In this document: in pieces, positions 21,957-26,529 of the stretch
Position numbering within the stretch: the first letter of the stretch is position 1
Layout of the letters: every line of letters begins with the position of its first letter
DNA from: Adineta vaga
Lineage: Eukaryota; Animalia; Rotifera
DNA: 64,000 bases
Reading direction: 5' to 3'
Assembly: GCA_021613535.1 (NCBI GenBank)
Contig: CP075496.1
Location: 6,944,001 to 7,008,000, forward strand
Notes under the pieces: model-generated
The model's database searches: none
Told to the model about the DNA's origin: nothing
The model's input: the letters and a program-made list of their open reading frames with translations, nothing else
Translations under genes and position numbers: made by a program

Positions 21957-24900
21957 ATGTCACTGAATATTACTCACATACTGCAAGATGAATTAATTAC
22001 TCCCATGGTAAAGAAAACAGCATATGGATTGGCAACAACTTGCATCCTTGGAGCGGCTGTTTATGCTGGATATCGTGTTGCTGCACCTGAAAAGCATCAT
22101 ATTCGACAACATCGACATCCAGAACTCAATGATCAGGTAGGTTCACTGGAAAAGAAATATCGATTCTTACAATGACGTCAATAATTATCATATGTAGGCG
22201 CAAGAAATCTGTTACATTTTTTCTTTTGAATAATATTACTGATTTCGACTGACATCAAAAGTGAATGGAATGCGACTAAAATAAGTTTTTATAGAAATAT
22301 TATTTTTAAAATAGATCGAAAACGTATCTGTCTATCTTTAAGAATAGAATCAAGTCAAGTAAGCAGATATCAGACACGAAACCTCTATTAGTTAAAACTA
22401 AGCAAAAAAAGCGAAGTATGATTCTTAAGCACATTCCAATTTGTTTCAACCAATTGATTTTTTGGTCTATCAAGTACTTTGTTTGAATGTACTTTTATTT
22501 GTACAAAGGAATCAAAAAAAAGACATAGGTTTGTCTTACACATTCACAGTCTGTCATTTGTTGACTTAACGTCGAAAAAGAATGTTTGATTTCGATGTAA
22601 TTATAGTTAGAAAATATTCTACCTGAAATTACTAGGAGTTTGTACAAATAATATACCTTATTTTCGAACATCCCACTGAGGTAAAACTATACATATATGG
22701 TTCGATAAGTCATCTTTATCTTTATAAGAAATATATTGAGTGGCATCTTAACAGTATTTTATAGTTTGGTCAAGAAATCAGTTCAAGTCTCAGAACTACG
22801 ATACAGCCTGAAATAATGTTCATGAAGGAATCAGAACAGTTTATCACCAGCATTTGAACTATTGAGATTATGTACAATTGATGTCAATCTGTGATATCTA
22901 ACTTCTATATGTAATAGTATCGTACAATAGTTTCCAAACAAAAAATATCATGGGCAATTGAGTGTGATTAGATATAGTAAATACTTCTTCTAATCAAACA
23001 TAAATTCTTCCGAGTTAGAAGTTGATCCGATCCATATTTATTATACCATCTTTTTCTTTGATGACTATTTTGATTAGATTGAAAAAGTGATTGATTCATT
23101 AAAAATAACTGATGAACAATTGATAAATATAATGCATATATTAGAAGAAGAAATGAGTGCTGGTCTTTCACCACTAACCCATAAACAAGCTACAGTAAAA
23201 ATGTTTCCAACATATGTACGAAATATACCAAATGGCACTGAAGTTGGTCAAGTTCTTGCGCTTGATCTAGGTGGAACAAATTTTCGTGTACTTTTAATTG
23301 ATTTACGTGGTAATGCAAGAGTTGAATTAACATCGAAAATTTTCGTTATTCCACAATCAATTATGATTGGTGATGGAAAACATGTATGTCAATTACTTTT
23401 ATTTAAATTTTGAAATAAATAAAACATATTTTTTGTTTACTTTAGTTATTTCATCATTTAGCTGAATGTTTATATGATTTTATGCAAAAAGAAAATTTAT
23501 TAAATACTACTTATTGTTTTCCATTAGGTATGATTAAACATTAGATGAATGGAATTTGATATGCATTCGAAGAATTTCCTAGGTTTTACATTTTCATTTC
23601 CATGTAAACAAGAAGGTCTAGCTTCAGCTCGATTAACAGCGTGGACCAAAGGTTTCAGTTGTTCAGGTGTTGTTAATGAAGATGTAGTTAAACTTTTACA
23701 ACAAGCTATCGATGAAAAGGTAATGTCTATATTTTCAAATTTAATTTTACATTTGAAGTTCTTTTATGAAATTCCTTTCAGGGTATAAATGCAAAATGTG
23801 TCGCTTTAGTTAATGATACTGTCGGTACATTAATGGCTTGTGCATATAAAGATCCAACAACAGCAATTGGTCTTATCTTAGGAACTGGAACGAATGCATG
23901 TTATATTGAAAATCTAGACAAAGTTGGTACATGGGATGGTGATTATGATGAACCGAAACAAGTTATTATTAATATGGAATGGGGTGCATTTGGTGATAAC
24001 AATCGTTTAAATCTTATTCGAACGAAATATGATGAAGAAGTTGATCTATCTTCAATCAATCCTGGAAAACAAATGTAACGATTGAATATTTTATATAATT
24101 ACTCGAAGAATTTCTTTATTGTTTTTCTATTTAGTTTTGAAAAAATGATTTCAGGAATGTATATGGGTGAGATTGTTCGTCTAATCATACTTGATTTACT
24201 TCAACATGAATTGCTTTTCCTTGGTCATCGTGATACATATGGTGATTATAAAACTCCATTATATAATCGAGGTGGTTTTTATACAAAATTTGTTTCCACA
24301 GTCGAAACTGATGAAGGTAAAATACATAATATTGAATCGCTGTTTTCTTCTATCATCGATGGTTTCTTTCGAAAGGTATTAAATTTTCTAATACACGTCG
24401 AGTACTTGAAGATATTGGTATTCATAATCCAACCTATGATGATTGTGCTATTGTTCAGCATATATGTCGACAAGTTTCTAAACGCGCTGCTCGATTAGCT
24501 GGTGCTGGTATGTAATTATCATTCTTGCGTTTTTTTAAATCAAAGTTTGCCGTTATGAAAACATCAGGTCTAGCTGTTTTAATCAATCGAATTGGTAAAA
24601 GTGAAGTAACAGTTGGTGTTGATGGTTCACTTTATCGATATCATCCACGTTTTAAACGTAATATGGAAAGATGTATGGAAACATTGGTTCATAAAGATAT
24701 TAAAGTACGTTTTAGTGAGAATTTCTCATCTAAATATATGTATGAAATTAAAATTAGTTGACAAAAAAAAAGCTTTTTAAGTTGAATTTGAAAACCAAAA
24801 ACTCAATCTCTTTAGTTTACAACACAAACTGTTGATGATGCGAGCGGTATTGGTGCTGCGATAGCAGTTGCAGCTCAATGTCGTTTATTTCAAATGAAAT

Positions 24901-25246
24901 AAATTGACAAGAGTATAATTAGATAGAAATCGTTCATTGTTTCATAAATTTCGTTTCTTACTATGCTGCATGTACATAGAAAAATATTATGTTAATCAAT
25001 AACTGAAAATAAATCAACTAATCTCATAATTGTCTTTTCTTTTTCTTTTTATAGTTTAAATTATCTCTATCAGATGATGGTAAACGATTCGAAAACTTTA
25101 TTCATACGATGATTAACTTGAAAATTTTCTTCCTTTTAGGTAGTGGCAAAGGAGCCGCTATGGTAGCTTGTGTTGCAGATCGATCTTTTATGATGACATC
25201 TGTTCTTCGAGACGAAGAAACAGCTGACTATGAAAAAGTTATTTAA
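21957..25246 (+). CDS. HK: Hexokinase with N-terminal hydrophobic anchor and two alternative terminal exons
   Basis: Motifs [80 protein letters not shown] and C-terminal DDGSGKGAA (exons 25055-25079 + 25140-25246). An alternative terminal exon lies at 24816-24902. Confidence 0.97.
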
Positions 25247-25714
25247 TCCTCACATTATTTTTATATTTGAGATATGAAGTTTCTATTTATATGAGAATAT
25301 CTTTCCTTTTCTATCTTGGAATTTGAATAGTTTTGTTTTCGTGTCTTTTATGTTGTTTTAGATCAGTACAGGAAAACCCAATCTATTTTCTTGCTTTTCA
25401 TTTTCTTGTACACCGTGTTTCTATCATATGTGATTTTATCTATTTATCTTGATATTTGTTTTGGAAGATATAAAGACAACTAAATTTTGAAAGAAAGAAA
25501 TGCATAAATAACATTTAACATAATTATAAAAGCAAACTCATTGACCTTGATAATGTCACTGTCGTAAAGTAGGTCATGTCGAATTGTTTTTCACATAGCG
25601 TTGATTACGTTGCATCGTAATGCAAGTATAGATGAAAATTACAAAATCAAGAATCCTTTTCGAAAAACTTTGCTTGTGTTTTTATTCAAACAAAACAATA
25701 GATAACAAGTTCTC

Positions 25715-26529
25715 TTATTTCCGCGTTCGTTTCTTTTTCGATTCTGTTTGGATTCCACCATTTTTACCTAATTTTGCATGTGAACGTCGAGGTTTTGTTT
25801 TCGTATGTTTTCCTTTTTTCATCAAACCTGTTGCTTTCATATTCTGTAATACAGACATTTTCTTCGATAAAGGCGTTTTAATCCTGAAAATATATTCATA
25901 GATTAAAAGAAATTCTAAATCTTTTTTATTCGTACTTTGATTTCTTTGATAATGTAGGTTCATTATCTTGATCCTAAATGGAAAGAAAAACATGGTAATG
26001 ATAAATACGTATCCTAGATTATTATTTACTTTGTCGTCTATTTCATTATCATTAACTTGATTATGACCCATATATATTCCAGTATTTGAATTTAATTGAT
26101 CATCCATTTCTGCAATTTCAATCGTATGATCTTTTAATTCAATTGTTCGTTTTTTTGTATTATTTTCGACGGTATCAAGTAAACCTAATGCTTCATGTCT
26201 TTTTTTCATTTCATCTCGACGCTAAAAAAACATAAACAAATCGATTCGTATTATTTTGTGAATGAATCTTACTTTTTGTCGTAAAATTTTCAAGTCACTT
26301 TTTATTTCATCCTCCAGATCTTTTTGTGCTCGTTCACGACGTTCAAGTTTTCGTTTATGAAAACCTTTTAGATATTCTCTTAAATAAAAATAAACAATTG
26401 AAAATAATTTAAGAAAAAAATCTTTTACTTTCGAGCTTGTTCATCAAAAACAAGTTGCGTTTTAGTTTGACGATTCTTTTTTGATCGACGTTGAATAAGA
26501 AATGATGGAGTACTTTCATCAACATCCAT
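25715..26529 (-). CDS. NOL12: Nucleolar protein 12 / Rrp17 (Nop25 family)
   Basis: Spliced MDVDES...LVFDEQARKEYLKGFHKRKLERRERAQ carries the family signature FDxxxRxEYLxGFHKRK, followed by a Lys/Arg-rich C-terminus. Confidence 0.9.

Follow-up and report, generated by a model that had tools for sequence, protein, structure and literature searches.

A hexokinase gene of the bdelloid rotifer Adineta vaga carries its last coding exon in two tandem homologous versions, termed here exon A and, downstream of it, exon B. The gene lies in a stretch of 64,000 nucleotides (the window; contig C4, positions 6944001-7008000) of a genome of 100.8 Mb in six contigs, with a G+C content of about 30%. The two adjacent exons share the same phase, follow the same phase-0 donor (24704|24705, in window coordinates) of the preceding exon, E8, and stand each behind its own AG. 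RNA contigs join E8 to the two-part exon B (B1 and B2) as the major route and to exon A as a minor one, and 13 related loci carry an A-type exon in the corresponding position. Together with the joint from E8 to A in contigs of two studies, this goes beyond chance. As a whole, the evidence is probably best explained by an old and real alternative last coding exon that is the minor form in this gene. A preceding sequence-only reading had proposed the pair of homologous last exons and an ancient duplication at their origin; its coordinates prove exact to the base when set against the sequence and its frames, and both proposals are borne out by the related loci.

Structure and use of the two terminal exons

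The domain assignment rests on a Pfam scan, in which E2 matches PF00349 (Hexokinase_1) at positions 2-101 of 201 (E = 5.2e-28), E5 matches PF03727 (Hexokinase_2) at positions 2-71 (E = 1e-25) and E8 matches PF03727 at positions 171-217 (E = 3.9e-7), so that the C-terminal domain is covered up to the adenosine motif (VGVDGS). Exon A of the window, with its 28 residues, and B2 are too short for a Pfam score on their own. A gene model of Adineta steineri (P0401), composed of E8 and an A-type exon, extends to position 241 of 242 in PF03727, and its end can be aligned with the C-terminal helix of each half of human hexokinase-1; A and B are therefore read as two versions of one structural element. 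The A exon of a paralogue on contig C3 matches positions 223-241 alone (E = 0.011). Judging from these profiles and alignments, either exon supplies the closing strand and helix of the hexokinase fold, and both fall on the same final positions of the PF03727 profile, about 223-241 for the A type.

The RNA data are Logan assembled contigs from four runs (X1, X5, X16 and X17) of four studies. Hexokinase contigs without introns occur in all four runs, which shows that the contigs derive from RNA, and all introns of the gene defined by them are GT..AG. The route from E8 through B1 to B2 is present in every run, with B2 in the main contigs; in X1 and X5 the letters of B1 sit between the two sides of the joint from 24704 to 25139. 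Loose letters ahead of 23071 match the end of E1.

The acceptor of exon A, whose use had been predicted from the letters, is joined to E8 (24704 to 24816) in two of the four runs, X16 (study P9) and X17 (study P10). The contig carrying the joint has 295 letters in both, made up of 26 letters of E8 and the collinear stretch 24816-25082, B1 included. This record arises independently in studies from 2018 and 2025; in X16 it has the reference letters, while X17 has G for A at 24861 (Ile to Val in exon A) and T for A at 24936. Both differences also occur in X1 contigs, and they probably mark a second haplotype or a strain difference. DNA contamination was considered as the source of the A-contig and ruled out by the lack of introns in the other contigs of these runs and by the exact GT..AG deletion of 24705-24815. 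Acceptor 24816 is in real use, at a low level.

The same contigs limit the sense in which the exons exclude each other. The proposal had been that they are mutually exclusive, which is true of the protein alone, because A carries a stop. In RNA the two are not exclusive, exon A and B1 being found on one contig (X16 record 7, X17 record 11), and RNA using A retains B downstream in the contigs seen. The intron part 24720-24810 has a depth of 0 in X16 and X17, so plain pre-mRNA would hardly account for the collinear stretch downstream of A. Alternative polyadenylation had been suggested as well. An AATAAA does overlap the stop of exon A, but the A-contigs run on into B1/B2 and the hexamer is not kept in the orthologous loci L017, L030 and L031. 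It was dropped as proof of a terminal exon for this reason, and because the 3′ untranslated region (UTR) of the major form in the window also has no canonical poly(A) signal.

Table 1. Features of the hexokinase gene and its alternative ends, in window coordinates.
Feature	Position	Strand	Remarks
E1	21957-22136	+	ATG and hydrophobic N-terminal segment; donor GT at 22137
E2-E7	23078-23383, 23446-23527, 23583-23719, 23782-24074, 24135-24316, 24376-24507	+	GT..AG joints in RNA contigs of 4/4 runs
E8	24568-24704	+	Last codon AAA (..HKDIK), phase 0; donor exon common to A and B, donor GT at 24705-24706
Intron spliced out with acceptor A	24705-24815	+	111 nucleotides, GT..AG; joint in X16 and X17
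Exon A	24816-24902	+	Behind ctttag; 28 codons, DASGIGAA, TAA at 24900-24902; minor form
AATAAA	24898-24903	+	Overlaps exon A stop; predicted signal only
TGCATG	24967-24972	+	A-B spacer; candidate splicing-regulator site
B1	25055-25079	+	Behind tatag; FKLSLSDD and first base of Gly codon
Intron within B	25080-25139	+	Phase 1, 60 nucleotides
B2	25140-25246	+	GSGKGAA helix, then 20-residue tail; stop at 25244-25246; major form
3′ UTR of major form	25247-25399	+	RNA contigs stop at 25368-25399

At the other end of the gene, the hydrophobic stretch of E1 has the appearance of a membrane anchor, and the intron that separates E1 from E2 measures about 940 nucleotides, compared with 55-62 nucleotides for the introns between E2 and E8. 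The intron within B is in frame and free of stops in the window, L017 and L030; its retention would add 20 residues inside the glycine motif.

Distribution of the exon pair among bdelloid hexokinases

The genome holds four close copies of hexokinase. In the copy on C1, the 79% identical partner (ohnologue) of the window gene, exon A is missing; 86 nucleotides separate E8 from B1 there, and the split B is kept. On C3, an intact A-type exon behind tttcag (FVLQLSNDGSGIGAALTVAA..) is followed by an intact, unsplit B. The C6 copy has an intact B and a relic of A with neither AG nor glycine motif. More distant paralogues on C4/C1 and on C5 have a single end each. The B1|B2 intron, which interrupts the Gly codon of DG|SG in phase 1, has the same position in the distant C5 paralogue (L013), and this intron is therefore old; it is absent from the B exons of the C3/C6 class and from L021 and L035.

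Outside these copies, 15 further loci were read, reached through a homologous-protein search with the open frame of E8, whose named closest relatives are Adineta and Rotaria, and through contig look-ups. Because a protein tree of E5 and E8 (143 columns) left all bdelloid copies unresolved, loci were assigned by signature residues (RIGK..MERCMET..KDIK in the window class, RINK..MEKCMK..KNIK in the other) and by synteny with the gene downstream. That gene (25715-26209, minus strand) is convergent with hexokinase and is shared by L017/18, L031 and L030, not by C1. A Pfam scan of it returned no family; in L017, a called gene adjoining it is marked Nop25 (PF09805).

Conservation of exon A in other rotifers, on which the proposal could have foundered, was looked up in these loci. 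Open A exons exist in both Adineta and Rotaria; in some loci the exon is degenerate or absent. In the window class, the A exon is open and stands behind an AG acceptor in L017-20, L036 and L031 (..DASGIGAA.. or ..DASGTGAA..), where split B1/B2 follows it. L030, of the same class, reads tttac instead of tttag before an A exon whose motif is degraded to SSGTDAT, and in L021-23 and L035 only B is present. P0401, the A. steineri model, terminates in an A exon of 28 residues, as in the window, with the same DASGIGAA. In the other class, L032 keeps both exons intact. In Rotaria sp. Silwood1 and Rotaria sordida the A exon is well conserved and used in public models, and the B motif is degraded (GSGKEVA, GSGQRAA). 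L033, L034 and L016 have A only. L016, L034 and L035, each with one version (A in the first two, B in the third), have a G+C content of about 38%, compared with about 30% here.

Public annotation of the Rotaria loci (L024-L029) has split the hexokinase gene at an E7-E8 intron of about 2.2 kb, giving models of 345-726 residues that lack the C-terminus and separate models of 95-98 residues that consist of E8 and the A exon.

Altogether, 10 loci have the order A then B, and 7 of these lie outside this genome; 3 loci have just A and another 3 just B. Eleven of the 13 A-type exons combine an intact glycine motif with an AG acceptor, and the two without AG (L030 and C6) are the two with a broken motif. 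As the pair occurs in both classes and in Adineta as well as Rotaria, it is older than the split of the classes and than the split of the two genera, and hence ancient; the copies have since kept both exons, A, or B. Further out, a hexokinase of the acanthocephalan Pomphorhynchus laevis (P0004) has an A-like end, GSGIGAAL. Protein searches with this sequence, in full length and as residues 30-533, returned mostly vertebrate hexokinases with two domains and no rotifer proteins.

Constraint on exon A and alternative explanations

The exon A sequences of the window and L017 share 80% identity; the upstream intron scores 0.48 and the A-B spacer 0.70, set against 0.62 for a shuffled baseline. The core of exon A (codons 5-20) has four synonymous and no non-synonymous changes between these two loci. 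At least four Adineta-type species (the window, L017, L036 and A. steineri) combine an open frame, an AG acceptor and DASGIGAA. The change of Gly to Ala in the A motif, correctly noticed in the sequence-only reading, is itself conserved in four Adineta-type species.

A short element in the A-B spacer is also conserved. Each of the five orthologous loci has a TGCATG 27-64 nucleotides past the stop of exon A (window, 24967-24972; L017, 3352-3361, doubled; L036, about 1441; L031, about 3355; L030, about 1556), within surroundings that align poorly and against an expected background of 0.047 per 150 nucleotides. It is absent from the spacers of the other (C3) class. Splicing regulators of the RBFOX type bind UGCAUG. 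A profile search of the genome with the RBFOX-specific PF12414 was silent, but so were the control genomes, which makes the search uninformative. Judged by its position and conservation, the element between the exons may govern the choice of A or B.

Several observations weigh against an old and real alternative last exon. A usage is low wherever it is seen: by contig depth, a poor measure, the A-contig reaches 7.8 in X16, where the E8 contig has 80, and 15.9 in X17, where it has 274, which comes to about 10% and 6%. The A junction is not among the contigs of X1 and X5, which is weak evidence since contigs drop rare variants. X1 covers exon A only with an unspliced piece, 24764-24948, at a depth of 2.4 compared with 48, on a contig that ends at 24948; the X5 contigs hold nothing on exon A. 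The A-contigs read through 24903-25054 and B1 into the start of B2, with no end after exon A. If the RNA does read through, the A stop lies 177 nucleotides ahead of the B1|B2 junction at 25079, the last exon junction, a distance of more than 50 nucleotides, with the geometry of a target of nonsense-mediated mRNA decay. Exon A has been lost from the ohnologue on C1 and has decayed in L030. Finally, the ratio of non-synonymous to synonymous differences (pN/pS) of exon A, which rests on 28 codons, is 0.44 for window-L017, 0.68 for window-L036, 0.62 for L017-L036 and 0.89 for window-L030. This is poor constraint beside about 0.1-0.15 for E8; B2 has 0.1-0.35. By the codon comparisons, exon A of the window class is thus maintained yet weakly constrained, as would be expected of a minor form or of an exon on its way to loss.

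Much of this would be expected if exon A were a slowly decaying relic of the old duplication, the joint from E8 to A being splicing noise at an intact acceptor and its product without a role. Low usage in two of the four studies, pN/pS values as high as 0.68-0.89 in some pairs, the replacement of the first Gly of DGSG by Ala and the continuation of A-using RNA into B all favour such a relic, as does the fate of A elsewhere (lost in C1, L021-23 and L035, decayed in L030 and C6). It is harder to reconcile with the joint preservation of frame, AG and DASGIGAA in at least four Adineta-type species next to a flanking intron that cannot be aligned. Acceptor loss and motif loss coincide, as expected with selection on intact exons; a conserved TGCATG adjoins exon A; and Rotaria, like other loci, has an A-type end as its working C-terminus. 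A relic is therefore judged unlikely, although it is the most serious of the alternatives.

It is less plausible still that exon A serves as a poison alternative, whose premature stop before the B1|B2 junction would expose the mRNA to decay and so tune the level of hexokinase instead of giving a second enzyme. The A-contigs do hold B1 and the start of B2 past the stop, with the spacing given above, and the conserved TGCATG would suit a regulated choice. A poison exon needs a stop alone, however, and here the glycine motif is conserved at the amino acid level, with only synonymous core changes from the window to L017. B has no intron in the C3 paralogue and in L032, and hence no junction lies downstream there, and genes with A only end normally in the same exon.

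That the A junction is an artefact of de Bruijn assembly and the RNA does not exist is very improbable: the evidence does consist of contigs, with just 26 letters on the E8 side of the joint, but the same record comes from two studies, one with the reference allele and the other differing from it at two allelic positions, the joint coincides precisely with GT..AG, and those 26 letters together with the TTTA that opens both A and B1 add up to 30 letters, the overlap that a true branch of a 31-mer graph would be expected to show.

An old, real alternative last coding exon that is minor in this gene thus stays the preferred explanation, and a mechanism can be outlined for it. The 3′ splice sites of A and B would compete for the single donor in phase 0, 24704|24705. 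A transcript spliced to B1/B2 would give the major protein, with the GSGKGAA helix and the 20-residue tail. Splicing to 24816 would give a minor mRNA whose frame ends in exon A and which carries B as untranslated sequence downstream; if translated, it would yield a protein with a different C-terminal helix, DASGIGAA, in which Ile replaces Lys, and with almost no tail. The pair arose before the two bdelloid hexokinase classes split and before Adineta and Rotaria diverged, and later duplications would have let copies specialise with both exons, A only or B only. In the window gene, B would have become the main exon, with A persisting as a weakly constrained minor alternative.

Possible consequences and relation to known systems

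The residue x of GSGxGAA is Lys in B exons and Ile, Val or Thr in A exons; in the human sequence it is presumably Arg447. By analogy, the exchanged C-terminal CONNECT-2 helix would correspond to helix alpha13 of glucokinase. That helix moves in activation and is part of the open-to-closed transition that governs activity (PMC3567010). The tails differ as well. In the window gene, exon A ends with next to no tail. Among the copies of the C3/C6 class (L004 1747-2180, L032, L025, L028 and L003), A tails are polybasic (..KQKPKQRRRSHL) and B tails are long and acidic (..DENEEEDIRIQFQ..). Such opposite tails may hint at different localisation or partners. The switch in kinetics or G6P regulation put forward in the sequence-only reading is likewise a hypothesis.

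Literature searches found no description of a duplicated or alternative last exon in hexokinase, although the kind of arrangement is already known, both as tandem exon duplication that gives alternative segments and as alternative last exons. The pyruvate kinase isoforms PKM1 and PKM2 arise from the mutually exclusive duplicated exons 9 and 10, a swap that changes allosteric behaviour. As here, a glycolytic enzyme has a tandemly duplicated exon that supplies two versions of one structural segment. PKM, however, has internal exons that strictly exclude each other and two abundant forms, whereas in the hexokinase the last coding exon is concerned, exclusivity comes from the stop in A, A and B can lie on one RNA, A is minor, and a difference in function is putative.

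Alternative last exons are represented by calcitonin/CGRP, and in egl-15 of Caenorhabditis elegans the choice between exons 5A and 5B depends on UGCAUG and is made by Fox-1/RBFOX. These genes resemble the hexokinase in having one donor, two downstream exons that end the protein differently, and a conserved UGCAUG in the intron between; they differ in that the A-contigs here read on past A and that TGCATG is conserved in C4-class loci only. Within the same family, isoforms of vertebrate glucokinase and hexokinase come from alternative first exons or promoters. There, alternative exons alter the N-terminus or targeting, while here the C-terminal CONNECT-2 helix is exchanged.

Ancestral splice alternatives can also be partitioned among gene duplicates, which is a form of subfunctionalisation. 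Copies with A and B, A, or B fit this pattern, with B decaying in Rotaria and A gone from the ohnologue of the window gene. The partition is incomplete here, since at least the window gene, C3 and L032 retain both exons intact.

A broader proposal, tentative and rather doubtful at present, is that bdelloids have kept, since before their families diverged, a UGCAUG-steered choice of C-terminal helix and tail that is now partly partitioned among ohnologues. This would be a counterpart of PKM1/PKM2 at the first step of glycolysis, with forms that differ in domain-closure kinetics, product inhibition or localisation.

Should the A form be noise or a decaying relic, the value of the pair would be limited to annotation and to an evolutionary example. 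For annotation, single-isoform gene models choose one of the two ends arbitrarily. If the A form has a role, the interest is wider. Hexokinase sets the entry into glycolysis, and a natural swap of exactly this helix has had opposite evolutionary outcomes in sister genes and in sister genera. The bdelloid copies would thus offer a clean case of an ancestral splice alternative partitioned after whole-genome duplication, and paired natural variants from which the effect of helix and tail on kinetics, inhibition or localisation may be learned.

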